A stretch of 64,000 nt of DNA. It comes from Macrostomum lignano. Lineage: Eukaryota. Within the stretch, counting starts at the first letter, position 1, and the number at the start of each line of letters is the position of its first letter. This document shows positions 28,425 through 64,000 of the stretch, one piece after another. The notes beneath the pieces were generated by a model that searched no databases, had not been told where the DNA came from, and saw only the letters and a list, made by a program, of their open reading frames with translations. The position numbers and the translations under genes are program-made. The stretch spans positions 62,001 to 126,000 of the forward strand of contig NIVC01002068.1 in the NCBI GenBank assembly GCA_002269645.1, in the 5' to 3' direction.

Positions 28425-29408
<984 letters not shown>

Positions 29409-34816: not shown

Positions 34817-37800
34817 ATGGTAGGTAATTGTTTGTGCAGATTTAATTATGTCAATCTAAACAATCACAAAATCGAACCAGTAATCTTCACATGGTTAGTA
34901 TATCGAAATGATATAGCTGCAAAGTGTGCATACATGTATAACTACCAAAATAATCCCCCACTCTAGACAGCCAGCCCAATAGATGCCATTGTGCTGTCTG
35001 ATACCAGCTCTTCAACAAGTGCATCTTCAGATTCATCATCTAGTACAAGTAAATCGTCACGCACATCGAAAGGTTCTGAAATTGTATGTTCAGAGGCTTC
35101 GAAAAAAGGAAAATGGCTTTTAAAACCATTTCATTCGGCCAAAGAAAAACAAGTTGGTAAACAAGGACCATCTAGCTCTATTCTGTACCGACATGTTCTG
35201 AAAGGCCGTCTGGACGACCTGCCGATCATGAACAGCCGCGTCGTGCGCATCTTCCTGTCGTCCACCTTCTCGGACATGGGAACGGAGCGCAACTACCTCA
35301 TGCAGCACGTCAATCCAAGGCTGAAAAAGTTCTGCCGTGACTCCTTCGGACTCGAGTTTCAAACCATCGACATGCGATGGGGAGTCGGTGACGAGGTACA
35401 GCTCGACCACCAGGGTCCGTACATGTGCTACCAAGAGATCGACAACTCGCTCATCATGTCAGCCGGCCCCTACTTCATCTGTCTGCTGGGTCAGCGCTAT
35501 GGCAACCAGCCGCCTGCAGCCCTTGTCGAGGTCGACGTTTTCAACAACATCGTGGAAGCGTTGAAAGAGGACGGACGCGACGTCTCGTGTCTACACGAGT
35601 GGTACACGATCGACGAGAACAACAAGCCACCAATCTGTGTCCTGAGACCGATTGCAACTCTAGCAGAGGCGGTAAGTGTGGTTTTTTACGATTATTGCAG
35701 CGCTTGTTTTTCAGAGTTTGCAACAGGATAAATTTAATAACCTCTAATCTCGTAATTCATTGTTCTAGGCGGACAAGGAGCTCTTGAAAGCTGCTCGACA
35801 GCGGTGGGAAGCTGTCCAAGACTCCATCATCGGACTCATGAAGAGAGGTGCCGAGTTGTGTCTTCAAAAGACTTTGATCTCGCACGCGACAATGAAGAAG
35901 TTCACGGCCTCTGTCACCGAGATTGAGGTGATCAGCGGAATATTGTCAAAACCTCCGCAAAAGTTGGCTCAGGCTCTCGCATTCGTGAGAGAGTTCTCTG
36001 ATCTGGAGTCTCAGCGCGACTTCTCTCGAGGAAAGATGTTCAAGTTCATCGACCTGACCGACTCTGTGAACGAAGATGGCGAGGCAGTAAAGGTTCTTGA
36101 TGAAGCTGTGAACGCGATGGTCAAGGAGTTGAACAGACACGTTCTGACTCGAATGGCGGAATCCAATTCCTTCACTTACTCACTAAAATGGACCAATGAC
36201 GCTGAGGGTGTGGGCATGAGTAGCCACAAAGACTATCTGGAAAAGTTCGGCAGCGACTACTGCGATAATGTGAAGCGCCTCGTGGCCGAATCCGTGCGGG
36301 AGAGCATGCGGCTCCGATCGGACGACCTCTACTCGGAGGTGCTGCAGCACTCGACTGCATGCGTCAACTACGTGAAGAAGTTCCAGGGTCGGCAAGAGAT
36401 CATCGACAAGGTGAAGGCTTATGTGCAAGCGAGCAACACAACGGAGCCTCTGGTGGTGTACGGCGACTCGGGCAGCGGCAAGACATCTCTACTTGGCAAG
36501 GCCGCCAGTCTGGTGCGAAGCTGGTTGCCAGAGTCCGATTCCAAAGATGCCATCGTGCTGCTGCGATTCCTCGGCACCAGTCCCGGTACGTCGAGCATTC
36601 GACAGACACTCAAGTACCTGTGCCGTCAGCTCGCTGTGTTCGGCAACGAGGACGACCAGGAAAAGTGCGAGTCACTCGACGACTTCAAGGAGATCTTGAA
36701 CACCTTCTACTCCATGCTCGAACGCATGGGCCAGTTCAGGAGAATCTTGGTGTTCCTTGACAGTGTTGATCAGCTGGACAGCTCTGACGGTGCGTACCAT
36801 CTGACGTGGGTGCGGACGCCATTGCCTGCCAACGTGAAGATGGTTGTGTCCACTCTGCCCAACATGTTCGACTTGCTGAAGACATTCAAAGGGAAGCTGC
36901 CTAACCCAGACATCTACGTGGAGGTGACGCCACTGGAGACCAGTCTGTGCACCAGCATTTTGTCGGCTCTGCTCAGCGAACAAGGTCGCACTCTGAACGA
37001 GCAGCAATGGGCTCTGGTCGAGCAGGCATTCTCCAAGTGCTCACTGCCAATCTATGTTCACCTGCTGTACCACGAGGTTCTGAGATGGCGCTCTTACCAA
37101 CAGGTGGATGAGTCGTCTCTGCGCTACACCGTTCGTCAGGCAATATTTCAGCTGTTCGAGAAACTCGAGTTGAAGCACGGCAGGCTTTTTGTAAGTACTT
37201 CGTGTTAGTTACATTAGCCCAGGCTAGTGAGAATAACCCAGAACTATCCGCCACTTATCTCTCTCTGTCAGAATGGCTCTTTCTGCTCATTTGCTTTTCC
37301 AGACCTCTCACGCCCTGGCATTCATCACTGCATCGAGAAACGGACTGTCAGAGTCGGAGCTGGAGGATCTGCTCAGTCTGGATGACGCCGTCCTCATTGA
37401 CGTGTTTCAGCATCACCTGCCGCCCTTCATCCGCATCCCGCCGATCTGCTGGGCTCGACTGCGTCACGACATTGGCTCTTACCTGGTCGAGAGAGAGGCG
37501 GACAACATCCGGGTAGTGTTCTGGTACCACCGACAGTTCATCGAGGTGGCTCAGGAGTACTTCTTGTCGGACGAAAAGACCAGACGGGACATTCACTCCA
37601 TCATGGCAGACTACTTTTGGGTCTGTGGAGCGGCAGGAGAAAGAAGTTCGTGTACCCAGCCTATCTGCGCAAGAAGCTCGTAAGTGATGAGCACTGAAAT
37701 TGATCTGTTCTCTGAACCGACTTACTGAGCCGTTTATGCATTCGTTCTCACTCCAGAACCTGCCCGAGTTCTCAATGGAGGACCGAGCCGTTCCCGAGCA

Positions 37801-40800
37801 GCCATTCGTGCTCCGCAAAGATGAGGACGGCACTGCTCAGTACAACCTGCGAAAGCTGAACGAGCTGCCGTGGCACCTCATCAAGTCCGGTCGAGTGAAC
37901 GAGTTCTACGACTACATTGTGTTTGACTACGACTTCATGTTCAACAAGCTGAAGGGCACGTCTCGGTACCTGCTGCTAAGAGACCTCGACCTCCCGCAGA
38001 AGCTCGGTGTCGAGTATATCAAAGAGGCCGAGCTCGTGTACAATGCAATCCGACTCTCCGCTCAGAGTCTCGTATACGACCCTGTCAATCTGAGCGTTGA
38101 TCTCATCGGTCGGCTCATCATGTACGAGAAGGACTGTCCTCGAGTGAAGCTGCTGCTCAACCAGTGTCGCCAGTCGAAACAGGCTCTCAGCAACTGCTGC
38201 CTCATCCCGAAGGTGCAGTGCTTCGACTCCGGGTCTGGAGTTCTCTACTCCAGCTTTGATCTCGGACTCGGAATGGGACTGGTCATGCCCAACGGTCAGC
38301 TGGTGTCCTTCTCACTCATCAACAACGAAGTCACCTGGTACGACATCGAGGGAAATGAGATCAAACGGTTCAGCTCCGACTACAACCTGTTCCTCAGCAT
38401 GAAGTACATGTCGACTGGATACATCCCAGACGACTGCGTAATGCACGTGCTATCGATGCGCTCGAAGAATGCCGGTGTCACCGAGGACGACAGACAAGCG
38501 CTTGTCCTTAACATGGGTCGGAAGAAGATCCAAGAGGAGATCGAAGAATACGAAGCGTGCAACAAGGATGTGCCGCAAGAGCTGCGAGACATGATGGAAT
38601 CGCTCAACGCTGGAGAGATTCCAGACAGCATCATGGAGAAGCTGGACGTAGACGGGATGATGAAGAAGATGATGTCTGGAGAGGAAGAGGCGCAGAAGTC
38701 GCAAGATCTCGTTCGAGTCGACTTCATGAACGGCAGGGTGACGAAACTGATGACTCTGGACCCATCATGGAGTGTGTCATCTGATGACGTAGAATATGTG
38801 ACAAAGGACTATGTGCTTTGTTGCAAGGGAAAGAGTGACTCAACGGGAACAAGCACTCTTAGACTGCTGTCAATCGGAGAGAAGAAGTTCGTTACTCTTT
38901 ATGACGAAGAGACAAGTGGAACTTCAAATATTGGCACCCAAAACCTCGACGGCAAAAGCAATCTGTTGTGCTTCTGTTTGGACATAAATGATAAGGCGTC
39001 TTCATTGTTGGTGGTTATGAATTTGGTGACTAGAGTGACTTCTCGGTTATATTTTTCTGAAAATTTCCAGTCCATGGACAAAGCTGATCTTAAACGTATG
39101 TGGCGCATGGACTCATGGTCAAGCTCTGCAAAAGCTGTGTCGGACAACTCGAGCTCTTTAAATCTACTATTAAGTGCCGAAAAAATTCGAGCAAATGCTT
39201 GCCTTTTTGGCCCCAAAGGAGATATTGTCGCAATGATAACTGCCACTGGAGAGACTAATAATAGAGATGTTGAGTCGCGAACGTTTTTCGTCGTTTTTTG
39301 TACTTGTGGGTCTCTCAAACCTGTTCACATAATAGATTTGAATACTGTTCTCGAAGTGAAATATTCGCAAAACTTTGCAAGCGCCTCCAGAGAGAGGTTA
39401 GCCTTTCTTTTGAAAAAGCGAGCCAAATTGACTGACGCGCAACAGGAACCAATTCGGGGAGTCATATTCGATGTTGCAGCGCGAAAGGCGACTCCACTGA
39501 GGATTACTCAGGCAAACAGCGAGTTTAAATCTGCAGTTTCGGCATTTGGTGACGGAACTCAAGCAAAATTTACGGAAGATGAAAAGCTCCTATTTACTTC
39601 TGGCACTAAAGTTCTGCTTCTAGTTTGGTCAGTTGAATCAGGTGAACTCATCAGAGGCATTCGAATGGGATCGGCTGAGAGTTTTTTATCCGGTCAGCCA
39701 AGGGGTACCGATTTTTTTACCATCTGCCATTTTCCCGATGAGTCGGCCGGTGACACTGACGAGCGAATGTACATCATGGCTAAGGTGTACAATACCAAGT
39801 CATTTCACGATGCGTCAATTAGAGAGGAGTCTGCCGTCATGCTTCCAAAATTTACCCAGAGAAGGCAAGCACGTTGCGCTGTATCGCTAACTAACAAATA
39901 CGAAGTCGATATCATAGGTAAGGAGACAATTAGTATAAACATTCGCGAAAAGTCTTCGAATACGCTTGATCAAGATGAAGAAAAGTGCGTCCTTTCCACT
40001 AAGCCCCAAATTGAAGTTCGTTGCCGACCCGGACAAAGAGAGGTCACGACGATTGTTATACGCGATTCTGATCTGATTGAGTCGTTATTCGGTGCCAATG
40101 ACGAACAACCGAAGTCTAAGAATGAGAGCAAAGATGTATTTGGAGTTCGATTTACTGTTGCTTCAGAGCATCCCAATGAGGATCCCACAAGGGAACAGCA
40201 ACGCTGCGCCCTTCAGACGACAGCAAAAGCTAATATGATGAATACCAAGTTCCTTCAATCGCCGATTTTGTCTGAAGACAACATACTAGACATTGTCTTT
40301 ATAAACGAAGCGAAGAAGTTGCTAATTACAATTAGGCTTACACTGCAGGACATTAAAGAGAGCTATTTATCAGTCATCAGACTCACAACTCTCAGAGGGT
40401 GCAGGTACAATCTTTCCGATTTGAGCGACCAATTTGGACTAAGTGCTGACTCTTTTGACAAAGTACTATCAAAAAGCTTCATGAAAAAATTTAACCACAT
40501 AATATTTCCATCTGAAGCTACCATTCGTGCCGATGAAGCAGAGGATGAAAATTTGGAAACGCGGCAGGACTTTACAAGTCAAAACCGACAAGAAATGATA
40601 GCGGACTTCATTAACAAGCGGATGTCAAAAAGAAACGACCTTGTCGACATTCAGTTCCTGCCAGAGAAGTGTACACTCAACCTGGCCTTCAGCCAACACC
40701 TCAAAGCGTCCGAGGAGATTCGCGTCGGCGTCGGAGTTCCTCCGATTTGGCTCGGCGCGGTTGTGCGCCTCGACTACAGCGACGTGGAGAAAGGAACTCC

Positions 40801-41477
40801 GACCAGCGAGATGCAGTTCCAGCACTCCATCGGCAAAGTGTTCGACATGGGACCCGCAGTGGCCTTCCTCCACGACAACCAGCACCTGGTCAACTACAAG
40901 CTTCAGATTGTGGACTACATGAAAGGCGAAGTGATCCGCTGTCTCAGTCAGGACGAGGACTTGTACTTTGTTAGATTGCAGGCCACGCCAGACTGCAGCC
41001 TGCTTGTTGGCCAGGTGTACTTTCCCGCCTACGAGGTGGAGTTCGCCGTATTCGATGACGAATCCATGAACAATTCGGACATGTTCGCAATTGTTCCACC
41101 TCGAGGCTTGCAGGTAAGATTTAGTAAATTTGTTGTTTTTACTACTTATAATTCCGGATACTGGTGTAGAGTTCGGATCTTCACAGTTTTGCACCTCATT
41201 GCCCGATCTTGCTCAGGTGTACCGTATATCAGACGGTTGTCGCGTTGCTAACTACCTGTTTGAGTCAGACCCCGTTGGCTTCTGCCTGATCGGTGAGGCC
41301 GGGCGGGACCTTCTGGTTCTCACGCACAATGCGCCCATTATGCTGTTTGAGCTGCTTGACCCAACTGAATCAAACTCTCCCGGCTCAACCTCATCTAAGC
41401 TGTCGACCCCTGATTCGTCAAAAACTGAGTCCCATGCGACGGAATCGCAACCCCGCCGATGCTGTACCTGCCTCTGA
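34817..41477 (+). CDS. NWD1/NWD2-type STAND protein: DUF4062-like + NACHT + degenerate beta-propeller (~2,040 aa). One apparent 1-nt frameshift at 37615-37618.
   Basis: Exons 34817-34819, 34967-35671, 35769-37190, 37303-37679, 37757-41113 and 41217-41477, all with GT-AG boundaries. N-domain [18 protein letters not shown]...DMRWGV; Walker [10 protein letters not shown]; Walker [11 protein letters not shown]; winged-helix [21 protein letters not shown]; [13 protein letters not shown]; WD-like [13 protein letters not shown]. Confidence 0.88.
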
Positions 41478-42354
41478 CATGAATTGCTTTGTTTAAACAA
41501 TTTCAAACTTTTCGTAAATGCAATCGTTTTGGCAGAAAAATTAGTTTGATTATTTTTATCCAACCATTTATTATATTTACGAGCGTAGTTTTTTGTCTTG
41601 CCTCTTCAGGACCTTCTTCATGACTATCTTAATCGGTTTGTTCAATGCTTGAAACATAATGATTTTTCGGCAGTACTATTAGTAGATAACTTTGCGCATA
41701 AAAAAGCCATGTTTCGCCTCGGATTCTTGGCGCCGAAAGGGCTTCAGATTTTATTTCAGCTGACAGAGCCGACAGGCCAATAATACCTGTAAAAAGCCTG
41801 AGCAAACACAGCCATGGGAGCCGTGATTCCGACGTTGCAGAGGCTGCCCTCTGCCTTGTTGCCGCTTACTTAGCTTGGATCTAACGCTACTTAGATGCCA
41901 GAGACACTCGGCGATGTCTTGCTTGTTTAGATCATAGCCAATGCCTTCTTTTACCTAGTACTTCCCTCACCCTGCGCGTGCCTGCTTGTGTTTGTATATT
42001 CTCTCTGTCTCAGTCAATAAGCCTCCCAACCCAAAGATTGCAGGCCTTGCACTGTCAACGGTCCCTTCCATAAGCTTGGCGCGTCCATTTAGCCTTATAG
42101 AACACACTGTAGCGATGTTCATGAAAGACTGGCTTTGCAATCTGCATCCTAATCTCAGTTTCGACCTAATTGTGATTATCTGGATATTTTAACTATTATC
42201 ATCGACCATGAGCCATGTACGAGGCTAATAGTCATATCATGGGCACAGATCACTTACCATAGACGACAGACCAACAGAACATTTCATCATTGACCAGTAG
42301 ATCACAGACCATGGACTATGGACTAAGGAACATAGACAGAGTCCAGTGGGCCAT

Positions 42355-43140
42355 AGACCATGGAACAGAGACCGTAGCTCATGGACCTTGAACCATGGAA
42401 CACAGGCCCTAGCTCATGGACCTTGAACCATGGAACACAGGCCCTAGCTCATGGACCTTGAACCATGGAACACAGGCCGTAGCTCATGGACCTTGAACCA
42501 TGGAACACAGGCCGTAGCTCATGGACCTTGAACCATGGAACACAGGCCGTAGCTCATGGACCTTGAACCATGGAACACAGGCCGTAGCTCATGGACCTTA
42601 AACCTTGGAACACAGACCCTAGCTCATGGACCTTGAACCATGGAACACAGGCCGTAGCTCATGGACCTTAAACCATGGAACACAGGCCGTAGCTCATGGA
42701 ACTTGAACCATGGAAAACAGGCCGTAGCTCATGGACCTTGAACCATGGAACACAGAACCTAGCTCATGGACCTTGAACCATGGAACACAGGCCGTAGCTC
42801 ATGGACCTTAAACCATGGAACACAGGCCGTAGCTCATGGAACTTGAACCATGGAAAACAGGCCGTAGCTCATGGACCTTGAACCATGGAACACAGGCCGT
42901 AGCTCATGGAACTTGAACCATGGAAAACAGGCCGTAGCTCATGGACCTTAAACCTTGGAACATAGACCGTAGCTTATAGACCTTGGACCAAGGACCATAG
43001 ACCGTAGCTTATAGACCTTGAACCATAGAACATAGACCGTAGCTTATAGACCTTGAACCATGGAACATAGACCGTAGCTCATGGACCTTGAACCGGTGGG
43101 GGAACATATAGACCGTAGCCTATAGACCCTGGACCATAGA
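42355..43140. repeat. 35-bp minisatellite
   Basis: Unit CCTTGAACCATGGAACACAGGCCGTAGCTCATGGA (period checked at 42421/42456), degenerate at the ends. Confidence 0.96.
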
Positions 43141-43984
43141 GCACAGGTTGTAGACCATAAATAGACATTGAAGCAAGGAACATACATGTAGACAATGGCC
43201 AATAGATCTTGGCTCATTCGATAGACTCTGGCCTGACCTGTCCAAGCGACCTGTTGCACTGTCTGCAAGACCCCAGTTGGCAGGACACTTCATATGCGCA
43301 GAACAAAGCCGCATTACTATCAAACTACTAAATTACTAAATTGCTAAATTACTATCGAAGAACATCAGAATTACTCGCTTTTAAATGTCTGCTTGGTACG
43401 TAAGCATTTATATTTATCATTAATTGCAAAAATACAGCAAAAATGGAGAGGTCTCAAAGCATACAGATAGTACAAAATCACAGCAAACGGAGACAAAGAG
43501 AAGAATGGATTACAGTAGCAGTATAGTAAAACTTGCCGCCAAAGTCAGGAAACAGGATCTGAGAGGGAAGACATCTAGGCAGTACATGTTGGAGTTGGCA
43601 GGTATCCCAGAGTAAGATAAATTGACATTTTCTATATGGATATCAATGAATATCTTCCTATCGACAGAGTATAGATAGAAAAGTAGGCGTGCCCAGCAAT
43701 ATACTAGCTCTATTCTAATGATAGTTTTAAATAGCTTCAAAAGTTCAATAAAGCATTGCCTTAAATATTGGAATATGCGCGCAAAAGATGTAGTAAATAT
43801 TCAAGTAAACTGCTTTAAAAATATTAGATATGAGTGTCTTAATATCAAGTGTAATTTATCCACAATCTGCGGCACGACTGATTCCAATAGCCAGGATCAT
43901 GCAGGATGTACACATCTTAAGTAGTACGCAAATGTATTTTATTGTCTAAAAGCTATTTACTACCGTCATCGAAGTAGGCATCCC

Positions 43985-45148
43985 TAATCGGTAGTCTACC
44001 CTAGTATTTGGTATTCTACACTAGCTAGTCGGTAGTTTACCCTAGTATTTGGTATTTAACACTAGCTAGTCGGTAGTTTACCCTAGTATTTGGTATTCTA
44101 CACTATAGCTAGTCGGTAGTTTACCCTAGTATTTGGTATTTTACACTAGCTAGTCGGTAGTTTACCCTAGTATTTGGTATTCTACACTAGCTAGTCGGTA
44201 GTTTACCCTAGTATTTGGTATTCTACACTAGCTAATCGGTAGTTTACCCTAGTATTTGGTATTCTACACTAGCTAATCGGTAGTTTACCCTAGTATTTGG
44301 TATTCTACACTAGCTAATCGGTAGTTTAACCTAGTATTTGGTATTCTACTCTAGCTAATCGGTAGTTTACCCTAGTATTTGGTATTCTACTAGCTAATCG
44401 GTAGTTTACCCTAGTATTTGGTATTCTACACTAGCTAATCGGTAGTTTACCCTAGTATTTGGTATTCTACACTAGCTAATCGGTAGTTTACCCTAGTATT
44501 TGGTATTCTACACTAGCTAGTCGGTAGTTTACCCTAGTATTTGGTATTCTACACTAGCTAGTCGGTAGTTTACCCTAGTATTTGGTATTTTACACTAGCT
44601 AGTCGGTAGTTTACCCTAGTATTTGGTATTCTACACTAGCTAGTCGGTAGTTTACCCTAGTATTTGGTATTTTACACTAGCTAGTCGGTAGTTTACCCTA
44701 GTATTTGGTATTTAACACTAGCTAGTCGGTAGTTTACCCTAGTATTTGGTATTCTACACTAGCTAGTCGGTAGTTTACCCTAGTATTTGGTATTTAACAC
44801 TAGCTAGTCGGTAGTTTACCCTAGTATTTGGTATTCTACACTAGCTAGTCGGTAGTTTACCCTAGTATTTGGTATTTTACACTAGCTAGTCGGTAGTTTA
44901 CCCTAGTATTTGGTATTCTACACTAGCTAGTCGGTAGTTTACCCTAGTATTTGGTATTTTACACTAGCTAGTCGGTAGTTTACCCTAGTATTTGGTATTC
45001 TACACTAGCTAGTCGGTAGTTTACCCTAGTATTTGGTATTCTACACTAGCTAGTCGGTAGTTTACCCTAGTATTTGGTATTCTACTAGCTAATCGGTAGT
45101 TTACCCTAGTATTTGGTATTCTACACTAGCTAGTCGGTAGTTTACACT
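43985..45148. repeat. 41-bp minisatellite (~28 copies)
   Basis: Unit CTAGCTAGTCGGTAGTTTACCCTAGTATTTGGTATTCTACA. Confidence 0.97.
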
Positions 45149-45181
45149 GCAGCAAATCTCACACGCGGTGCAGTCTAAGCT

Positions 45182-45583: not shown

Positions 45584-46156
45584 GTTCCTCTGCTTCAGAC
45601 AACTCTTGTTGCCTAGGTCTCAGGTAGAAATCGCTGCTTTAATACGCTTAGCCGCGGACTGACTGCTGCATCTCTATCCCCCTTCCAACCCCAGCCATCG
45701 CCCGCCCCGGTTTCCGCCCCTCTGTCCAGAGCCACGGGATGCTGGACCCTCTCCATCGATCCAAAAGCGACGCAAATTGCAGCTTAAATTTTTTAGAATT
45801 GGACCGGCTGCAGAAGTATTGCAGATTAGACAATCGCATTGCTCTGAGTTTTTTTCTAATAGTGGAGAGAGAGAGAGAGAGAGACAGAGCCTGCCCTGAG
45901 CGTTTTTGATCTGATGCCTAATTTAGAGCCAGCTGCAGTTCATTCTGCCCATATGATCTCTGTTGCTCTCGGTGCTGAGATGGGATCAGAATTGTCCCCT
46001 GGCCTGCTCTGCTGGTCTCCAACACTTCTTGCCTTTCGTATTGCAATCTTCATTGAGAACACTGTGGGCCTGCTGCTCAACAAGTGTCGCTGTTTGTTTG
46101 ACTTTTCATCGAATCAGAACAGTTTCATCTGATATTTTTCGAGTTGAGTATCAAAC

Positions 46157-53012: not shown

Positions 53013-54369
53013 TTTGCTGATTTCGGTTGTTCTGAGAGTTCAAATTTTGTTTGAGAGGCCGCCGGTTCTTAATGCGAGAGTTGGGGCTCTAATTTACAGA
53101 CTAGTTTAGCGACGAGATGGCCAGCCAAGCTCTAAATGCTCATTTTTTAAAGTTGCCCCGCTTCTACCTGTCAGAAATTCTCTCTCTCCCCCTCTCGTGC
53201 AAAGCTTTGAAAACTTAGTCTTGAGCCAAAGGAAGAGCTTAGAGGAGGCGTATCAAAAGGAGGCGAGCGGCGATGGCGCTGGTCTCGCTGCTTTGCCTGA
53301 GTCTCTCTCGCTCTCTTGACAATGGAGGCTGAGCAGAGTACTCAGGCCACGGCGGTAGCAGCAATATAGCAGAGCAGAGACCTCTAGTAGCCCACTGTAA
53401 TATCAAGCCTTTGATACTTTTTAACTGGTTGTGAGAAAAGGCTGAATAGACGAATGACGGTGCTTTGCAAGTAGCCTCTGGTAATTTTCTGTGCCAGAAA
53501 GCAAAGGAACTACTCACGGACTACTTAAGTAGAAGGACGCGACACGCGCAAAACGTGCAAATTTTATTGGAGGCTGAATATTCAATTTTATGTAGCTCGA
53601 CTCCAGAAACTCGCCGAAGTGTAGTTTTTTCACATGATACAAATAATTTAGTCCTTGTTCATGTAACATATGTAATGCATGATTAAAACGATGCAGAAAC
53701 CTTAGAAATTAGTTTCAAGCGACGAAAACTAACTTTCTCTGGTGAGTTTCGAGTCTCGACGTGCGGCATTTGTAGCACAAAATATAGCTCTTCATTTTGA
53801 TATAGCACTTATTTTAAACGATTCTTTTAGCTGTTCATTGTTACTGTGAAGCGGACCTTTTTGACCTGGTCATAAGAAAACCTATCGCAAGATGTACAGA
53901 CATAAAACAGATACCACTGATTCTGCGCCAATCGTATCGGATAAATAGAGTCAAGACGAACTAAGACGAAAGATTTTAAGAACACGAATTTTGAGTCTTA
54001 GTAGCCATTCAATATTTTTATGCCATATTAATATTATTGGCCTTTTTAAAATGTATGCAAAAGTATATATCAAAGTGGTATAAGATAGCTAGCAGGTTTC
54101 TTGTATAAAGCAAATGCGAAAACATGCAGTTTAAACAGTATCAACAAAAGCGTACAACGAAATATTTTACAACAAAATGATCTATTGTATCAGGACAACT
54201 TGCTATAACATTGCATCAAAAAAACTTTGATTGCATCAAAGACAATTAAGTAGTCCGTGGAACTACTGTTAGCAATAAATACTGACCAAACTTCTAACAG
54301 TTCTGAAGAAAAAATATATTCAAAGGGTAAAATTGCTGCAAAATTTTATACAAACTAAAAAACAGAAAC

Positions 54370-54782
54370 AACCTAAAAACAGACTTTCTAATTCCTAGAA
54401 ACAGACTTTCTAATTCCTAGAAACAGCCTTTCTGATTCCTAGAAACAGTCTTTCTGATTCCTAAAAACAGACTTTCTAATTCCTAGAAACAGCCTTTCTG
54501 ATTCCTAGAAACAGACTTTCTGATTCCTAAAAACAGACTTTCTGATTCCTAGAAACAGTCTTTCTGATTCCTAGAAACAGACTTTCTGATTCCTAAAAAC
54601 AGACTTTCTGATTCCTAGAAACAGTCTTTCTGATTCCTAGAAACAGACTTTCTGATTCCTAGAAACAGACTTTAGGATTCCTAGAAACAGACTTTCTGAT
54701 TCCTAGAAACAGTCTTTCTGATTCCTAGAAACAGACTTTCTGATTCCTAGAAACAGATTTTCTAAATCTATTCCTAGAAACT
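54370..54782. repeat. 22-bp minisatellite
   Basis: Unit TTCCTAGAAACAGACTTTCTGA (period checked at 54481/54503). Confidence 0.95.
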
Positions 54783-55234
54783 GACAAGCACTGAAGAAAA
54801 ATACCTTTTTGTGCGAGATGTTCAACACAGCAATTGGTATGTATGCAATTCACGCCCATTAGGGCCAACCCCTTTATAACACAGAGAGTGTACATGCCTT
54901 GCGAATAGAAAAGTCAGGAACGCTGGAAACCCTGTTTGTGTGCCCCTGAGTACGTATAAACTGCGTGAATGTGTGTGCTCAAGTTTAGCAAAATTATAAA
55001 ATATAAAAAGGAAAGCGAGTAACTGGCTTAAGTCTGTGGCTAGGCTTCCCTATGTCGGGATCTGGTTGCTGTATGCTGTATAGTCTATGGCTTTTGCTTG
55101 GCTTGGCCAGGCTTATTCAGTCAGCCAAGCTGAGAGCGCAGCAGCAGTGCAGCGATCAACCAAGCTCGCTCAAGGCCTCACCGCACCGCTAGACTACTGA
55201 CTTAGGTAACACTGACAGCTTAACCAAAGCCGGC

Positions 55235-56821
55235 ATGCAGGAGATTATCACCATCCACATTGGTCAGTGCGGCGTCTGCGTCGGGCTCAAGTACTGGGAG
55301 AGCCTGGCCGACGAGCACGGCCTGGACTGTCAGGGCCGGTTTGTTGGCTCCAGCCCGTTGCAGCTTGAAAAGATCGGCGTGAACTTTGCGGAGTCGCAGT
55401 CGGGCCGGCACTCGCCCAGAGCTGTGTTCGCCGATCTGGACTCCACCAGCGTGGCCGCCCTGTCCGCCAGCTCCTGCACCGGCCTGTTCCGGCCGGACAG
55501 CCTCATTGAAGGCACCGGGGAGGCCGCCAGCACATACGGGCGCGGCTACGACTCACCCGGAGCCAAGGCGATGGCCGAGTCAATTCTGACCTCCGTTCAG
55601 CGACAGCTCGAGCTGAGCGATCGAGTCCGCGCGGTTCACATCGTCCACAGCCTGGGCGGCGGCACCGGCTCCGGCCTGACCAGCCGCCTGCTCCAGCAGG
55701 GACTGTCCGGCGTCCCTGTGCACACCTTCAGCCTGTTCCCCGGCCAGCCGGCCATCATCGAGGCTTACAACGCCACCCTGTGCGCGCCGCACCTGGCCAG
55801 CAGTGCCGAGATCACCTACTGCTGGGACTTGGCCGGCCTGCGCGCGGCCAGCGAACGTCCAAAGCCGGACATTGAAGACGTGAACCGGACAGCGGCCAAC
55901 ATGATGCTGGGCCTGACTGCCTGCGTCCGGTTTCCTGGACAGCTAAACCTCAGTCCGGGCAAACTGGCCAGCGCGCTGGTGCCCCTGCCCAGGTGAGAAC
56001 TCGTTTGAGAGAAATTTGAGTTCAGAATGGAGACTCAATATTAGCATTGGCTGGCATTGTAGTTAAGATTGTATAGGTGTAATTCGAACTCCTTAAAGGT
56101 AAGGATTGGTTTCTGAATCCACGCTTGTACGCTTCGTCAGCTCTTCTCCCCCTCGGTTTTACGCTCGAAGTTTCACTTAGCTCCAATAAAGAAATTCTCT
56201 CCGCGTTCGTCTCTCGCTAATCTAAGTATTGAATATATTAGACATCGAAAGCTGAAATTCTACAGGTTACTAAAGATTAAGGTGCTTTCAAGGTGCTCAA
56301 AGGCTGATTAACAGTGTCGGACTCGTTTCCGCAGGCTGCACTTCCTGTTGTCCTCGCTGGGCTGGGGCTCCACGCACGGCAACTCGGTCCGTGAGCTCTC
56401 TGCTCGGATGCTGAGCCCGGAGGCGCAGCTGGCGGCCTGCGACCCCTCGGCGGGCCGCATCCTCTCAGCGGCCGGCATCTTCCGCGGCCGGGTGCCAATC
56501 CAGGCGCTGGACTCAGCGCTCACCGACCTTCGGGCGCGTCGCGAGGCCGTCTTTCCCAATTGGCTGACTCACGCCTTCTCAACCGGCGTCTGCGACATTC
56601 CGCCGCGCGGCGAGACCGTCTCGGCGGCTTTCTTTGTCAACTCGAGCTCCACAGCTAACCTGGTTGAGCAGCAAGCTACCCAGGTGCGCAAACTGTTTGC
56701 CAGCGGGAGGGCCTTCTTCCACCTGTACCAGCAGGAGGGCATCACCGAGGGCGACATGAGCGAAGCTCTGGACGAGTGCGACCGGCTGTGCAGTCTCTAC
56801 CGCGAGACCGCGACTGCCTGA
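55235..56821 (+). CDS. Highly divergent beta-type tubulin lacking the acidic C-terminal tail (exons 55235-55992 and 56335-56821; 414 aa)
   Basis: Tubulin signature HSLGGGTGSG plus GQCG, DEHG, PRAV, FRPD, YNATL, RFPGQLN, VPLPR|LHF, AACDP, FRGR and the beta-specific CDIPPRG. Phase-2 GT-AG intron. The protein ends at YRETATA*. Confidence 0.9.
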
Positions 56822-57162
56822 GCCGCGCACCCAGCGCATAATTTTGTTTAAAACAGGGTATGAAAACTAAAAAAGTCTGGCTGAGTTGGGTAAATTTGGA
56901 TGCAAAGCGTCATCTGGAGTAAAACAATAGACGGCTCAAAGCAGAGAGCGAAACGCTCCATTCGTTTCTTTTTCAATTTTCAAACTGTTTTCTCCGCGTT
57001 TAGTCTTTTATTTGACAATACTGGTGGTCTTGCCAGGAAAAGAGCTGCTGAATAACGTGAACTTGTCTAATGACTTGTCCAATGGGCACTTAAGGAGCAT
57101 CTTTACCAATGGGGAGAACTATCAACAGAACCAAAGACATCTTTATGAGTGAGAGGACATTT

Positions 57163-57641
57163 CCAACAGTTTGGGAACATGTCTAACAGCAGTTTGGGAA
57201 CATGTCCAACAGTTGGAGAGCATGTCTAACAGTTTGGGGACATGTCTAACAGTTTGGGAACACGTACAACAGTTCAGGAACATGTCTAACAGTTTAGGAA
57301 CATGTCTAACAGTTTGGGAACATGTCTAACAGCTGGCGAACATTTACAACAATTTGGGGATATCTTCAAAAGTTTGGGAACATGTCCAACAGTTTGGGAA
57401 CATGTCTAACAGTTTGGGAACATGTCTAACAGTTTGGGAACATGTCTAACAGTTTGGGAACATGTCTAACAGTTTGGGAACATGTCTAACAGTTTGGGAA
57501 CATGTCCAACAGTTTGGGAACATGTCTAACAGTTTGGGAACATGTCTAACAGTTTGGGAACATGTCTAACAGTTTGGGAACATGTCCAACAGTTTTGGAA
57601 CATGTCCAACAGTTTTGGAACATGTCCAACAGTTTGGGAAC
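57163..57641. repeat. 20-bp minisatellite
   Basis: Unit AACAGTTTGGGAACATGTC(T/C). Confidence 0.95.
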
Positions 57642-58449
57642 TGTTATTAGGACGTTAAATTATTCTGAATGACACCTTAGTATACACGACAAACAAGCAG
57701 TTTCTCAGGATTGGTGATTGTCAGGTTAATATTTGATTTCTTATAAAATTAAGAAAGTATAAGCCAGTTAACTAAAGTGGATCACCTTTTATTTTAACAA
57801 AAATTGTATTAGGGCAGTCTCTCTGACTGTATTAATTTGAGTAGATAATGGAAGCACAGATAAAACAGGACAGATCGGGTGCCAGCAGTGATCAAATTAT
57901 CGCAAATCAAAGAATTCTTGAACTATCAAAAACTAATCACTCTGATTTTACTATTAAAAAAGACAAACTTATATATAAAAGATTCATTCAGTAATAGCTG
58001 AAAGTAAAAATGCGATAAAAATCGTGTAAGAATTTCTTTAGTCTATCTGCTGAATTGGTTGCTAGGTAGAGAATTTTGTTTCAATAATCTCTAATCTAAG
58101 GTTAGGCCATAAAAATAGCACAAAAAATAGGCGCAGTGATGTCACCTTAATGCTTGATACAGAAATGGACTGAAAAAATATCTGGGCATTTCTTTTGTGC
58201 TTCTTAGTAAAAAGAGGTAAAATTAGCGACTCCGATTGAAAGTAATTTGAAGGGCAAGCGGCCAGTGAAGGTCAAGCAGTTTTTTCCTATTCATAGCTCG
58301 TATTTGTAATCTTCTTTAGCGTACTGTGAATTCTTCAAATGAATTTAATCAAATGACAGCTTGACCAACTTAACCAGAGTGCAATTAATAAGGCAAGGCG
58401 CACGGTCAGTAAGCTTCAAGACAGCGAGTCACATCAAGGAAATTCAGCT

Positions 58450-61400
58450 TCAGATATCTGGCTGCTGGCTGTCGCACTGCGCCTTGTAGCGCAGCAGGCA
58501 CTGCGCCAGGAACTCGATCGGGTCCACGGGCCTCGCGTTCGCTACCTCGGCCATTGAGCTGGCCAGTGCTGGCTCTGGAATGAGAAAATGGGGGGATTTT
58601 GTAGTGCTCAACGTGTTCCATAGGGTAAAGACTCTCAAGACACCGCTCTCTGAGGAGGCTGGAAACACCGCCTTCTGAGCAGGACTCTGAAGACAATACT
58701 CTGGGAGAAGGACCCAGAAGACACCACTGTGGGAAGGACTTTGGGGACACCAATGTGGGAAGGACCCTGAAGACACCACTCTCTGGGAAGGAATGAAGGA
58801 ATCTGAAGGCACAATGTATGATTATCAAGAGGTCACGATTCACACACAACTGCCATAGCGTCGAGGCCGGTAGGCCGAGACGCGGTAAGGCAGTTGTGTG
58901 TGAAGCGTGAACTCTCGATAGTGGAATTGTGTCTAGTTTCGTCCAAAAACCAATTCAAAATGGCTAGGACACAACTTCCCAGACGGGAATTGTTCACTGA
59001 GTGATTCTAGGGATTTGTGTCATAGGCATTTTCCACTTGGCGCAAGCCAGATGATGGCCATAGACTAATCGTCTGGAACGAAAAGTTAAGCGGAACAGTC
59101 TGAAATTACCATAGACGAAACATGTTAAATGAAGTTGTGGTCTTATAAGCTGGAACCAGGGACAACTAAAACCCTCGGGACGCGAAACGAGCCAATTCAT
59201 GGCAAAAAATCTGAGGGGCTCGCTTAAAAGTATTGTTCTATGGCTTTTTCAAGTCTTCTCTGCTATCAGGCAAATTAAAATTGCTTTAGCTGCGGCCAGC
59301 AGTGAAGCTAAGCTGAACTATATCAAGAGAAGCATTTTTTATTCACTTGATGAAATGCCAAGAAAGTGCAGCGTATTTCCGTGCTCGTCAAATTACAACT
59401 CTGAAGCCGTTCGAACACGGACATTTGCGTTTCCCAGAGATCCACAGGAGCGAGAGCGATGGAGAAAGGCGCTGCCAAATATTCTCCAGGTAAGAAACCA
59501 GATCATTTGCTGTCATTACTGCTGCATAATTCCGCTTCAATTCTGCATGCCAGTCTCGTCCAAACAACTTGAAACCCAAAATTTATTATTTTAGAGAGTG
59601 ACTGACAATATGGGCGTGTGCGTAAAGCATTGGCCAAGCGATGCTCCAATGTTCAAGAAAAACTCTACCAAAAGGCCAATTAATCCTCCTTCTGTTTTTA
59701 ATGGAGTTCCTAGCTCGTGTTTTGTTCAGAACCAAGGTACGTAACTTAAAGATTGCTCAACACTTAGCGTCTATATCGATTTTGCCGCTCACAATTATCT
59801 TACTTTTATTTTTACTCTTATTTTAGACCAGGACCGACAGGCCGAAAAGCGCGGTGTTCTTTCTGACGCGAGGTGCAGCGACATCGATGAGATGGACGCT
59901 TTTCAGCTGCTTGATTTTTTGCCGGCATGGGAAAGTTTTCGAGCTGAGGTGAAAAAATTCGGATGTCGTATCTCGACATGCACTGAATACAGCTATTCTG
60001 AACGAAGATGTTTACTTGTTTACGTTAGATAAAGATGGAGACCTGTCTGTTCGAATTTTTGTCTCACCTAACTTTCTGATTCGTGCATTCAAACTGCATA
60101 CACCGATTTCGGTTCGAGACTTGTTGGGATTTCAACCGACACTCAAGCGCTCGTCAAAAAAAAATCCCACCAATACCGACGACATCCCATGATAGAAAGC
60201 TTCGGAAGTTAGATTTCCGAAGAACTTTCGAAGCTTTCTATCATGGGATGTCGTCGGTATTGGTGGGATTTTTGACGAGCGTCTTACTAGTCCTTTGAAA
60301 AAAACGTTGGCTAGCCGACGGGACACACTGTCCATGCTGAACGCTGGCTGGAATGCTCGTCTCTGATATCAAATCTGTTCCTTTGATGCCTGCCTTCTTT
60401 AGTCGCTGTATAACCTGTCAATTTCCAATAAAGCACGGTTTGAATTGTTTTTATGAGATTGTGTAAAACCTCGTGAATTAAATTTTAATTAATATCCAGC
60501 TTACCTGCGATATAGTAGAGCGAAGCCATCTCCGAAATGGAAAGCTCCTCTGATTTAGCAGCACAATTATCAATGGTCGCCAGTTCAATTTCATTCAGCT
60601 GTTCATTGCAACATTTGCTCCGATCGTGCTTGTAGTCTGCTAATTCAAGGGATGCCAATAATTTCATTCGTCGGAGTCGAGCACTGAGCAGCACTTGCTC
60701 CACAGATACATAGTAGTTGCCGCCGCTCATTTGGCGATATACGCCAGCCAGCCAGCCAGAACGTAGCTGATTCGTGGGTCGGACAAAAGAACCTCACACA
60801 TCTCACAGGCTCCGCGCAGTGAGTTTACTAGCGCTGACTTGGTCTCGGGCGTCAATGAATGATGGCGAGCTCGGCCTTTTCCACAATGTGTCGAATCAAA
60901 CGAATCCGCGAGCGCGCTAAGAAATTGTATGCTTTCATCTTGAACGGAATAGACTGGTCGCCTGTCCGGATCCCGTAGTCGTGCGTGTAGATCAGGATTT
61001 TTACAATTGACAATTTTCCAGAATCTCACTATGGTTTTGATAAATTCCGCAGTGTCTGAGTATCCATCACACTTCAATGCAGCGGCAACCCTTTCATCGA
61101 GAACTTGAAGAGCGAGACTGACTTTAGTTTTCTGAGTGCTTGTGGGATAACAGGCCTCATGAGTTAGACATGTGCGCTTGACTACGTGGTCTTTCTCCAT
61201 TTGGTACAGGCGTACCACGTCTGACCATTTAGCGGATATCTGTCTGTCAGCGCCAGGAGGTTGAATGCTTAGAATTCCATTCGCTTCCATTTGCCAATTG
61301 TTGCGAATGCATTTGATAATGTGAACGAAATCGAACAGCATGAAGAATTCCGACTCCTGTGCAGCATCCGTTCCAATCCATGGCTTCTCTCTTCCATCGC

Positions 61401-64000
61401 TAAATAAAGCAAAACACTTGCGGTTGGTAGGTTGATTGTCGCTGACGAGAGCAACGACACGGCCACCGTTGTTGTTAATTGCTTTAATACATTGGCTGAC
61501 GCATTTTCGCAGAAACTCCGCAGACAAAATGTATGTCGGCAATAGTCGGACTACAAACGGTTTTCCACCAAGTAATGGCTTTACCATTATGGCCAAAATT
61601 GTCCTAGCAACCTGGTCCGGATCGTCGACGGCTCGACCCAGGTGACGGCATCGATATCGAACGGACGGTTGTATGTACATTTCGTCAAACATATTACGCA
61701 GTTTCGCTGAGCTCCTGATAGACTAGCAAAAACTGACTGGATCACATCGACTGCGTCGGTTTCTGTGCCAACTTCTCCTGTACCTGCTAGTTGCAGCTGC
61801 AGCGTTCGGGGATGAGGCAATGGCAATAGCTTCCGTAGGTAAGAGTAAGCCGAACTACTGATCAAGTAGAGCAATGCTGACTGTCGCACTAGTGAAATGT
61901 CATAGCGGCGATTGTTCCGATTTACTAATGTAAGGCTAAGTTGTCGAATCAAAAACTGAAGCGACCGATCCAAATCAGAGTCAGAATCTATATCATCACT
62001 GATTCTACTAACAAACGCTTCGACTTCACGTTGGGGATTGGCGTCGGAATTTTTGCACCGCACGACAACAGCATCCAGTTGCGACCAGCGCTTGAGTGTC
62101 GGTTGAAATCCCAACAAGTCTCGAACCGAAATCGGTGTATGCAGTTTGAATGCACGAATCAGAAAGTTAGGTGAGACAAAAATTCGAACAGACAGGTCTC
62201 CATCTTTATCTAACGTAAACAAGTAAACATCTTCGTTCAGAATAGCTGTATTCAGTGCATGTCGAGATACGACATCCGAATTTTTTCACCTCAGCTCGAA
62301 AACTTTCCCATGCCGGCAAAAAATCAAGCAGCTGAAAAGCGTCCATCTCATCGATGTCGCTGCACCTCGCGTCAGAAAGAACACCGCGCTTTTCGGCCTG
62401 TCGGTCCTGGTCTAAAATAAGAGTAAAAATAAAAGTAAGATAATTGTGAGCGGCAAAATCGATATAGACGCTAAGTGTTGAGCAATCTTTAAGTTACGTA
62501 CCTTGGTTCTGAACAAAACACGAGCTAGGAACTCCATTAAAAACAGAAGGAGGATTAATTGGCCTTTTGGTAGAGTTTTTCTTGAACATTGGAGCATCGC
62601 TTGGCCAATGCTTTACGCACACGCCCATATTGTCAGTCACTCTCTAAAATAATAAATTTTGGGTTTCAAGTTGTTTGGACGAGACTGGCATGCAGAATTG
62701 AAGCGGAATTATGCAGCAGTAATGACAGCAAATGATCTGGTTTCTTACCTGGAGAATATTTGGCAGCGCCTTTCTCCATCGCTCTCGCTCCTGTGGATCT
62801 CTGGGAAACGCAAATGTCCGTGTTCGAACGGCTTCAGAGTTGTAATTTGACGAGCACGGAAATACGCTGCACTTTCTTGGCATTTCATCAAGTGAATAAA
62901 AAATGCTTCTCTTGATATAGTTCAGCTTAGCTTCACTGCTGGCCGCAGCTAAAGCAATTTTAATTTGCCTGATAGCAGAGAAGACTTGAAAAAGCCATAG
63001 AACAATACTTTTAAGCGAGCCCCTCAGATTTTTTGCCATGAATTGGCTCGTTTCGCGTCCCGAGGGTTTTAGTTGTCCCTGGTTGTATTGAATAAAAAAT
63101 ATCCTCACAAACGCATTGATACAGGAATATACAGATTGCTTTTCTGCAAATGGGTATATCCAAATATAACCCGTTGGGAATATCCAAAGATGGGGGGCGG
63201 CTTGACCATGGACTATTCGCAGATAAGCAATCCCTGTTTCGATGCCTGAAAGGCGCGCAAAAATTTACTTAGTTCACAATTTCCGTCGACGCAATCGTTT
63301 GTGGCCCAAACGAAACTAGACACAATACTGAGGATTCTGAAAATCCCACTGGGATGAAATATTAAAATAAAATCAGTAATTTCCCTCAGCGAAGAATCCC
63401 AACTTCAATTAAGCCTTCCGGAATACATCTAGGGCAATAACGCTTATTAACTACCACGTATTAAGATGTAATCAACAACCCCTTGAATCTCACTCAGCAT
63501 GTCCAGGTATTCCGGTCTTGGACCAGGTGCTTTCGCCGGCGAACCTACACTCGAGTCTACATTCGCCGTTGCATCGATCGCCTTCATCGAGTGCATCTGG
63601 GCAGCTCCATCAGCAGCAACTAGCGGTTGCGGGTCGTGAAGCTCAAACAGCATGATTGGTGCGTTATGCGTCAGCACCAGCAGGTCCCGACCATCTTCCC
63701 CAACCAAGCAGAGTCCGAAAGGATCCGACTCAAACAGGTAGTTTGCAACGCGGCGTCCATCACTGATTACATAGACCTGGAGTGCAGAAATTAAACGCAG
63801 TCATTGAGAAAAGGCATCTTTAGATCGGATTCTTATAAGCGTAAGCATTAAAAGATTTGCCATTCCCTATAACAATCGTTGCTAATCTTACCTGCAAGCC
63901 TCGAGGTGGAACAATTGCGAACAGGTCCGAACTGTTCATGGATTCGTCATCGAATACGGCGAACTCCACCTCGTAGGCGGGAAAGTACACCTGGCCAACA
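58450..64000 (-). CDS. 3' part of a second NWD-type STAND paralogue (exons >64000-63892 and 63776-63494, plus predicted last exon 58574-58450 encoding a Dpy-30-like motif)
   Basis: 64000-63892 matches 41005-41113 with 2 mismatches in 109 nt, and the next exon is homologous to exon 6 of copy 1. Phase-1 donor GTGAGA at 63493 and phase-1 acceptor TTCCAG at 58575 give EYLDMLKPALASSMAEVANARPVDPIEFLAQCLLRY. The last-exon link is a prediction. Confidence 0.75.
58821..58922. other. ~100-nt long-stem hairpin (tiny MITE or pre-miRNA-like)
   Basis: 34-bp arms with 4 mismatches (core TTCACACACAACTGCC / GGCAGTTGTGTGTGAA) and an inner GCGTC-GGCC stem. Confidence 0.55.
59154..60151 (+). repeat. Inverted copy of the transposon 5' kilobase (upstream region, THAP exons, start of exon 3)
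   Basis: Reverse complement of 62087-63084, both 998 bp. THAP ATG at 59355 mirrors 62883. Confidence 0.95.
60148..60281. repeat. Near-perfect palindrome at the junction of the inverted duplication
   Basis: CGCTCGTCAAAAA..ATCCCACCAATACCGACGACATCCCATGATAGAAAGCTTCG and its reverse complement flank a ~24-nt loop. The arms differ only in A/T-run length. Confidence 0.93.
60290..62883 (-). pseudogene. THAP + P-element (THAP9-like) transposase pseudogene
   Basis: THAP C2CH finger (MPRKCSVFPC...W...CVKHW...PSVF) split by GT-AG introns. Core motifs AYSYLRKLLPLPHPRTL, FDEM, DNQPTN, FDFVHIIKCIRNNW, KVSLALQV, YRQMSGGNYY, YYIAG|Y. Frameshifts near 62283, 61688 and 60745; 3' end truncated at the 60148-60281 hairpin. 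Confidence 0.9.

Follow-up and report, generated by a model that had tools for sequence, protein, structure and literature searches.

How can two facing genes be nearly identical over 3.8 kb, introns included, and then agree at only about half of their positions within one and the same exon? This question is raised by a stretch of 64,000 nucleotides (nt) from the flatworm Macrostomum lignano (assembly GCA_002269645.1, contig NIVC01002068.1, positions 62,001 to 126,000; the whole stretch is called the window hereafter), which contains an NWD2-like gene, copy 1, and the end of a second one, copy 2. We consider it likely that the two are old paralogues in which recurrent gene conversion holds two tracts alike, whereas a propeller segment and the C-terminal tail have stayed old. 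A first-pass annotation, made from the letters of the window, had described a convergent pair of NLR-like (NOD-like receptor) STAND genes (signal transduction ATPases with numerous domains) that exchange sequence and end in different C-terminal modules; it had gone on to suggest a possibly undescribed invertebrate receptor family that shuffles its sensor propellers and swaps localisation or oligomerisation tails.

Copy 1 (+ strand, 34817–41477) and copy 2 (− strand, 58450 to beyond 64000) are indeed convergent, tail to tail, with 17.0 kb between copy 1 and the last exon of copy 2 and 22.0 kb between copy 1 and its penultimate exon, in agreement with the 17–22 kb estimated at first pass. Within the window copy 2 is represented by three pieces alone, i.e. 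109 nt of its big exon, the penultimate exon and the last exon; it was read past the window end from the same contig, locus L002 being a 100% match to window positions 48450–64000 (15,551 nt). The spliced translation of the three pieces is the C-terminus of an annotated protein (P0123, 2025 amino acids), in which DUF4062, NACHT, WHD_NWD1 and Dpy-30 domains are matched, and copy 2 aligns with copy 1 through the introns of the shared part; the common exon structure claimed for the two genes is confirmed, and copy 2 does have a NACHT. A third NWD2-like gene, copy 3 (P0121), follows on the same strand as copy 2 about 25 kb past it, outside the window, and copies 1, 2 and 3 form a three-gene cluster. 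Copy 3 sits in a tandem duplication that takes in downstream sequence too, and a deletion and a frameshift in the segment defined below as block B disrupt its big exon. The first-pass annotation had mentioned neither copy 3 nor three features described below, namely the frame break in copy 1, the genes between copies 1 and 2, and the transposon in the last intron of copy 2. The gene models are as follows.

34817–41477, + strand: copy 1, NWD2-like gene, six-exon model with GT-AG at every junction
34817–34819, 34967–35671, 35769–37190, 37303–37679, 37757–41113 and 41217–41477, + strand: exons of copy 1 in this model; the first one (3 nt, ATG at 34817) is speculative, a guess
63892–64000, − strand: 3′ end of the big exon of copy 2, the remainder lying past the window on NIVC01002068.1
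63494–63776, − strand: penultimate exon of copy 2, ending ...GPRPEYLDML, the first part of a Dpy-30 motif
58450–58574, − strand: last exon of copy 2, which completes the Dpy-30 dimerisation/docking motif and carries the stop codon
L003 10001–16200 (L003 = NIVC01002068.1:146588–172117), strand of copy 2: copy 3, beyond the window

Mosaic of copies 1 and 2

Alignment of copy 1 with copy 2 divides the former into four blocks of very unequal identity. Block identities refer to the true copy 2 on the same contig; the intron and base composition comparisons, as well as those of nonsynonymous (dN) and synonymous (dS) divergence, were made with a copy-2-type locus (L001) that is collinear with the locus of copy 3, and the key ones were repeated with the true copy 2, giving the same result.

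35199–38973, + strand: block A, shared tract, 98.09% identical to copy 2 (72 differences at 3775 sites)
38974–40633, + strand: block B, diverged in-frame propeller segment, 50.5% nucleotide and 41% amino acid identity to copy 2
40634–41121, + strand: block C, shared tract, 98.36% identical to copy 2, made up of the last part of exon 5 plus the initial 8 nt of the intron that follows
41122–41480, + strand: block D, 53.8% identical to copy 2

Block A opens at the start of the TeTIR/DUF4062 domain and extends past the NACHT, the winged helix and the helical domain to take in the first part of the propeller region; three introns fall within it. These introns are as alike as the exons (97–99% identical, bar one indel-rich stretch), and dS amounts to 0.07 in the exon-5 part of block A and to 0.04 in block C, whereas it is saturated in block B. 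The identity in A and C, since it extends to introns and synonymous sites, is therefore not explained by protein constraint. Block B, with a dN of 0.63, has a frame open over 553 codons and a conserved core of 80 codons (39542–39781) in which protein identity reaches 80% despite the saturated dS; the reading frame is continuous through both the A/B and the B/C boundary. It also stands out by its base composition, with a GC content of 0.43 and a GC content at third codon positions (GC3) of 0.42 in copy 1, against 0.52–0.55 and 0.70–0.74, respectively, in the flanks; in the copy-2-type gene the GC3 of block B is 0.50. The compositionally distinct in-frame segment noticed at first pass thus corresponds to block B, and the near-identical tract noticed beside an older, diverged exon corresponds to block C: the overlap visible in the window (41005–41121 against 64000–63884) has 2 mismatches in 117 nt and grows to 488 nt beyond the window, and the exon that follows is 78% identical between copies 1 and 2. 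The intron after block C could not be aligned between copy 1 and the copy-2-type gene, and the sequence of copy 1 located 5′ of 35199 is unrelated to that gene. The mosaic boundaries are abrupt; at the first of them, differences private to copy 1 accumulate from 38873 on and identity falls gradually over 38873–38973. Each copy retains private variants within blocks A and C. As judged from these identities, A and C must be of very recent common ancestry and B and D of ancient divergence. Divergence is thus far from uniform, and the two genes, only about 50% alike in block B and with unrelated flanks, are not haplotype or assembly duplicates of each other.

The same mosaic is borne by a second contig, NIVC01002705.1 (L004), where copy 1′ is collinear with copy 1 in all blocks (97.4% identity over 9.6 kb). 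The proportion of differences between copy 1 and copy 1′ at synonymous sites (pS) is 0.031 in A and 0.087 in C, against 0.008 in B and 0 in D. In sub-windows of 400 alignment columns, one or the other version of copy 1 is nearer to copy 2 or copy 3 than to its own counterpart; at 37584–37982, for instance, copy 1 differs from copy 2 at 3 positions and from copy 1′ at 22. The block A alleles of copy 1 are held patchwise in common with copy 2, copy 3 and L001, and the four sequences display a star pattern in this block, copy 1 differing by 1.8–1.9% from the other three, which differ by 1.1–1.5% from one another. That the two versions of copy 1 differ more inside the shared blocks A and C than in the private blocks B and D, and that alleles are held in common patchwise, requires conversion after their split and speaks against a single chimeric origin. 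Recurrent interlocus gene conversion best explains the exchange between the copies, and the raised GC3 of the converted tracts may be a footprint of GC-biased gene conversion.

We propose the following course of events. Copies 1 and 2 would go back to old paralogues of a flatworm NWD2-like gene coding for a STAND ATPase of the NWD1/NWD2/TEP1 kind, built from a TeTIR (DUF4062) effector, a NACHT NTPase, a winged helix, a helical domain and WD40-like propellers. Gene conversion would homogenise a 3.8-kb tract (the chassis of TeTIR, NACHT and winged-helix domain, the first propeller part and three introns) and a second tract, 0.49 kb long, where the propeller region ends. Conversion would leave out a propeller segment of 1.66 kb together with the last intron, the last exon and every flank, all of them anciently diverged. 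The outcome would be a shared signalling core placed on two repeat segments and provided with two C-terminal address tags. The exchange of sequence suggested at first pass is therefore upheld by the abrupt boundaries and by shared tracts that include introns and synonymous sites, but its direction is the reverse of a shuffling of sensor propellers: it is the chassis and one C-terminal tract that are homogenised, whereas the propeller segment and the tail have kept their old divergence. Indeed, the copy-2-type genes have a dN/dS of about 0.25 in block B, which in the aggregate gives no indication of diversifying or positive selection on this segment.

A single chimeric origin would make ongoing exchange superfluous: a recent duplicate of the copy-2/3 type would have had its segment and tail replaced once, or an old gene would have been patched once. 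One or two ectopic recombinations would also give a two-tract mosaic, and several NWD2-like paralogues of greater divergence are present in M. lignano (P0004–P0007). On the other hand, copy 1 shows no relationship to copy 2 in its flanks, at its 5′ coding end or in its last intron, as is to be expected of an old locus and not of a recent segmental copy; none of the retrieved proteins is nearer to its block B than block B of copies 2 and 3; and the two versions of copy 1 are 4–10 times more different synonymously in blocks A and C than they are in blocks B and D and have alleles patchwise in common with copies 2 and 3, which requires events after their split. We regard a single chimeric origin as distinctly unlikely.

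A similar mosaic is seen at the protein level between two other M. lignano proteins from UniProt, P0005 and P0006. They are 95–100% identical in patches of the N-terminal half, 24–56% identical in the propeller region and 96% identical in one window near the C-terminus, after which the tail is diverged. Around the P0125 locus, which holds a gene of the P0005 type, no adjoining NWD gene was found within 10 kb. Compared at this level, the two proteins hint that mosaicism may be a habit of the whole family.

Domains, propeller region and tails

The product of copy 1 comprises 2041 amino acids after repair of a 1-bp deletion described below, and the repaired translation is 99.5% identical to an M. 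lignano protein (P0001) over residues 74–1208. Its Pfam matches are DUF4062 (E 1.5e-9), NACHT (2.8e-10), AAA_16 (6.1e-12) and HTH_NWD1 (PF25469, 2.1e-8); the NACHT reads in the translation as a P-loop NTPase with a Walker A motif (GDSGSGKTS) and a Walker B motif. The DUF4062, NACHT and winged-helix matches agree with the initial designation of the genes as NLR-like STAND genes. A homologue search with the spliced model of copy 1 returned M. lignano NACHT proteins first (78–82% overall identity), followed by Schistosoma proteins annotated as 'NACHT domain- and WD repeat-containing protein 1', with one orthologue for each Schistosoma species among the matches, and by mollusc, hemichordate, echinoderm and amphibian proteins of the NWD2-like or NWD1 kind. 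The mollusc 'NWD2-like' proteins were matched at E 1e-190 and below, and vertebrate NWD1 was also matched. On these matches, copies 1 and 2 are members of the metazoan NWD1/NWD2 family of NACHT-WD40 STAND ATPases. M. lignano proteins of this type, including Dpy-30-tailed ones, are already present in UniProt and NCBI, and the idea of a possibly undescribed invertebrate receptor family has to be abandoned.

The DUF4062 of this family has been described as TeTIR, a TIR-like NADase domain, and its NADase is active in TEP1 (10.64898/2026.09.21.753143; 10.64898/2026.05.01.722283). The corresponding domain of copy 1 was aligned by phmmer with the solved TeTIR of human TEP1 (11gz_A, E 2e-10). In the significant stretch of this alignment the TEP1 positions S905, R914 and R942-W-G are retained in copy 1 (SST, ER and RWG); the position of the catalytic E1008 is kept as well (SVTEIEV in copy 1, SVTEMEV in TEP1), but in a second stretch that is non-significant. 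In an alignment of 29 sequences the column of the catalytic Glu is almost invariant.

For exon 5 of copy 1 (1119 amino acids) no Pfam match was obtained even at E ≤ 10, WD40 and NWD2-propeller models included. With 29 homologues as input, AlphaFold2 gave a model with a mean predicted local distance difference test score (pLDDT) of 55.6, in which a helical domain precedes a long β-rich region (residues 163–680, block means of about 38–86). When this model was compared to the PDB with Foldseek, the top 50 matches were mostly WD40-type propellers together with full-length Apaf-1, the best E value being 5e-11 and the TM-scores low. The model suggests that "degenerate propeller", the term used for this part of copy 1 at first pass, is a fair description, in which we have moderate confidence. 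Block B (residues 407–960 of exon 5) takes in the best-modelled β-strands and also low-confidence parts, which are probably loop-rich. By analogy with Apaf-1 and TEP1, the propellers might keep the NACHT autoinhibited until a ligand or a partner binds, and oligomerisation could then bring the TeTIR domains together.

The two genes part company again at their C-terminal ends, and here the first reading of a CaaX box in one and a Dpy-30 module in the other proved right. The last exon of copy 1 can be summarized as follows.

41217–41477, + strand: last exon of copy 1, ending RRCCTCL*, with the CaaX codons at 41463–41474

Its first 50 or so amino acids are homologous to copy 2 (86% amino acid identity) and are followed by an unrelated Ser/Thr-rich tail, which ends with the CaaX box CTCL, the Cys being at position −4. 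The last residue of a CaaX box specifies the prenyltransferase, Leu at this position designating geranylgeranyltransferase I; from its sequence, the tail of copy 1 is predicted to be geranylgeranylated and membrane-anchored. A C-x-x-x C-terminus is present in 36 of the 115 homologous proteins retrieved, including mollusc NWD2-like proteins, echinoderm proteins, amphibian NWD1 and another M. lignano paralogue, so that the CTCL of copy 1 matches a habit of the family. Copy 2 ends differently. Its last exon alone matches the Pfam Dpy-30 family (PF05186) with an E value of 1.2e-7 and 31.7 bits (cut-off 22); the motif is split by the last intron, and the spliced tail can be aligned over the junction with residues 8–53 of human DPY30 (3g36; E 6e-6). 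In copies 2 and 3 this pair of helices, a dimerisation and docking module, is predicted to bind a partner by way of an amphipathic helix in the latter. Tails of the Dpy-30 type were recognised in four paralogue lineages of Macrostomum, and a weaker likeness to them is seen in the orthologues from Schistosoma. A relic Dpy-30 exon 3′ of copy 1 (41.4–48.5 kb, both strands) was not found. No paper linking NWD1 or NWD2 with a CaaX box or with prenylation was found in a literature search that did not extend to Dpy-30 tails. The dichotomy between Dpy-30 and CaaX tails is the most original point of the present analysis.

Reading frame, assembly and neighbouring genes

Several points weigh against two paralogues whose signalling core is kept alike by conversion and put to use with different tails. 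The first concerns the integrity of copy 1, as both of its assembled versions are frame-broken, each in a different way, the remainder of the 2041 codons being open:

37616, + strand: frame-breaking 1-bp deletion in exon 4 (TTT-TGG in copy 1; an extra C in copy 2, copy 3 and L001; TTCTTGG in copy 1′)
L004 15122–15167 (NIVC01002705.1): 23-bp tandem duplication of copy 1′, TACTTTGTCAGACTACAGGCCAC twice, the CaaX-encoding end being otherwise conserved

Exon 4 of copy 1 has one base fewer at 37616 than every other copy, just past the winged-helix domain, and this leads to a stop at 37681–37683; adding back one base yields a protein stretch identical to P0001–P0003. In copy 1′ this site is intact, and it is instead the perfect 23-bp duplication, located in block C, that shifts the frame. 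Copy 1 may thus no longer make the protein described here, and the sole annotated model at its place is a partial protein of 510 amino acids (P0124), inside the P0003 cluster. The breaks are either assembly errors or the very recent start of decay in a neopolyploid line; in the sequenced line, decay of copy 1 or a polymorphism for null alleles of this gene is probable. Moreover, the middle residues of its CaaX box (T and C) are non-canonical and not the classic aliphatics. Human NWD2 has little or no NADase activity in vitro (10.64898/2026.09.21.753143; 10.64898/2026.05.01.722283), which makes the effector step uncertain. Finally, the genome is that of a neopolyploid and was assembled from long reads (PMC10733133), and cross-talk between paralogues during consensus building or polishing could inflate the identity of A and C.

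Taken to its end, the last point becomes an explanation in its own right, namely that reads of neopolyploid paralogues were mixed in the consensus, giving rise to the near-identity of A and C or to the whole mosaic. The indels that break the frame of copies 1, 1′ and 3 would fit such an artefact, as would the near-duplicate contigs (copy 3 and L005a are 0.05% apart), a perfect inverted duplication of 1002 nt inside the transposon of copy 2 described below, and the difficulty of assembling M. lignano (PMC10733133). However, the same boundaries occur on two separate contigs, the frame is open through both of them, each copy has its private variants inside A and C, and identity fades over 38873–38973 with no switch as at the end of a read. 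We judge an artefact of this kind very unlikely.

The gap between the two genes bears on a parallel drawn in the first-pass annotation, that with the linked NLR pairs of plants, which act as sensor/helper units. It holds unrelated genes:

48530–56821, both strands: unrelated genes between copies 1 and 2 (called genes of L002, Pfam)
53012 down past 48530, − strand: Gln-rich/coiled-coil gene, called gene of L002
55235–55996 and 56348–56821, + strand: divergent tubulin-like gene (Pfam Tubulin, GTPase domain, 1e-32; Tubulin_C, 1.2e-16)

Cooperation of copies 1 and 2 as a receptor pair in immunity or allorecognition, comparable to paired plant NLRs, might be argued from the NLR-like architecture with its TIR-like effector domain, from the physical linkage and from the differing repeat segments and tails. 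No sign of a sensor/helper relationship was found, and we attach a very small probability to it, because the genes are convergent and not head to head, lie 17 kb apart with the tubulin-like and coiled-coil genes between them and are followed by a third copy; because copy 1 is frame-broken in both assembled versions; and because a single orthologue per Schistosoma species was found among the matches and dN/dS in block B is 0.25 among the copy-2-type genes. The studied relatives have neuronal or metabolic roles: QUI-1 of Caenorhabditis elegans, the orthologue of NWD1, is needed for chemosensation (ciliated neurons; PMC8871372), and mouse Nwd1 reportedly has neuronal and hepatic roles (PMC7186558). 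These roles by themselves neither support nor rule against an immune-receptor reading. Selection alone, with A and C strongly constrained, B and D fast-evolving and no exchange at all, has next to no probability, for although block A encodes the conserved enzymatic core and block B is in part modelled with low confidence and probably loop-rich, the identity of the block A introns and the contrast between a dS of 0.04–0.07 in A and C and saturation in B contradict it, since neither can result from protein constraint.

The last intron of copy 2 (58575–63493) owes its length of 4.9 kb to a transposon. The latter has Pfam matches to THAP, Tnp_P_element, TNP-like GBD and RNaseH_N, and is lacking in the otherwise collinear locus L001 on another contig, which provides the empty site. 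Each junction bears the sequence ATTGTGYC, as would be expected of an 8-bp target-site duplication; inspection of the ends of the insertion by eye revealed no terminal inverted repeats. The inverted duplication it contains (59154–60155 and 62083–63084) is 100% complementary and doubles the 5′ end of the transposase gene, where THAP is encoded; either a genuine foldback or an artefact of long-read assembly may lie behind it. The gap of 17 kb is also unusually rich in minisatellite arrays, one of which (50296–50816) falls within an open reading frame (ORF) of the coiled-coil gene.

58816–63317: P-element/THAP9-like transposon inside the last intron of copy 2
42357–43094, 43984–45145, 46151–47352, 47966–48455, 50296–50816, 52039–52499, 54372–54763 and 57157–57641: minisatellite arrays with periods of 16–44 nt

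Just 5′ of copy 1 there is a gene with a DUF4517 domain (33053–33517, + strand, E 5.5e-14), and such a gene is also found upstream of copy 1′ on the second contig. Farther upstream, an exon at 25893–26507 (+ strand) encodes a fibrinogen C-terminal globular domain (E 5e-36); invertebrate proteins with domains of this type are often lectin-like. Read from their ORFs, 12478–16032 (− strand) appears to encode the α subunit of the signal recognition particle receptor, and 29995–31271 (+ strand) a putative multi-pass membrane protein that resembles a G-protein-coupled receptor. A long microsatellite-like array at 28305–29508, which translates as (IYLS)n, accounts for the strong GC and AT skew of the 2-kb bin in which it lies. 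The window begins with a tandem satellite array of 7.5 kb (1–7534) that is open in several frames and gives artefactual ORFs of up to 2507 amino acids.

Significance and comparison with known systems

The distribution of the tails leads to a more speculative proposal, which we hold only tentatively and consider rather unlikely: a flatworm NWD2-type gene would have swapped the usual CaaX anchor for a Dpy-30 module, and the Macrostomum cluster would keep both tags as well as differing propellers, with the core held identical by conversion, as a small modular set of sensors. If true, a single signalling engine would be combined with alternative ligand-binding segments and cellular addresses. To our knowledge no function is known for NWD2, and NWD1, NWD2 and TEP1 have only lately been recognised as animal STAND proteins with a TIR-like effector. 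Two points were not found stated in the literature searched: the occurrence of CaaX ends across the family (36 of 115 proteins), with Dpy-30 in their place in flatworm NWD2-like proteins, and linked paralogues that share an effector-NTPase core kept by conversion and differ in a repeat segment and in an address tag. The contrast between the tails predicts that the site at which the protein is anchored matters for its function, and the host is a tractable regenerating flatworm, amenable to RNA interference and transgenesis. The importance of these observations is nevertheless moderate, since gene conversion among NLR-type genes is well known, the proteins are already in databases and the CaaX-tailed copy is apparently broken in the sequenced line.

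The closest known system is the NWD2 (KIAA1239)/NWD1 family itself, including QUI-1 and T05C3.2 of C. elegans, in which the order of domains is the same (DUF4062/TeTIR, NACHT, NWD1-type winged helix, helical domain, propellers). NWD2-like proteins are the best database matches, with 36–38% identity in the N-terminal half, and the C-terminal CaaX box of copy 1 is common in this family. On the other hand, the propeller region is too diverged for any WD40 or NWD2-propeller Pfam model, and instead of the CaaX tail of NWD1/NWD2 a Dpy-30-type end is found in copies 2 and 3 and in other Macrostomum paralogues, a weaker one being present in Schistosoma. The similarity to TEP1 concerns the TeTIR domain, which can be aligned and retains the functional positions; TEP1 is an active NADase, any such activity of copy 1 being putative. 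The TROVE/VWA extension of TEP1 is lacking in these proteins, of which human NWD2 is a closer relative. The predicted fold of exon 5, a helical domain followed by propeller-like β-sheets, matches full-length Apaf-1 and suggests the same logic of autoinhibition by the propeller as in the apoptosome; unlike Apaf-1, the proteins have a NACHT in place of NB-ARC and a TeTIR in place of CARD, the TM-scores are low and much of the model is of low confidence.

Plant sensor/helper NLR pairs are typically arranged head to head around a shared promoter, one partner carrying an integrated decoy. Copies 1 and 2 are likewise linked genes of NLR type with different C-terminal parts; in contrast to the plant pairs they are convergent, have other genes between them, belong to a group of three and have no decoy domain. 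In the fungal NACHT-WD40 genes of the HNWD/het type it is reportedly the WD repeats that are exchanged and diversified, whereas in Macrostomum it is the effector-NACHT chassis that is homogenised, the repeat segment being left untouched and under purifying selection. The zebrafish NLR family (10.1101/027151) and the fungal genes nevertheless offer a parallel, as there too linked paralogues of NLR type exchange sequence in such a way that some modules are homogenised and others stay distinct.

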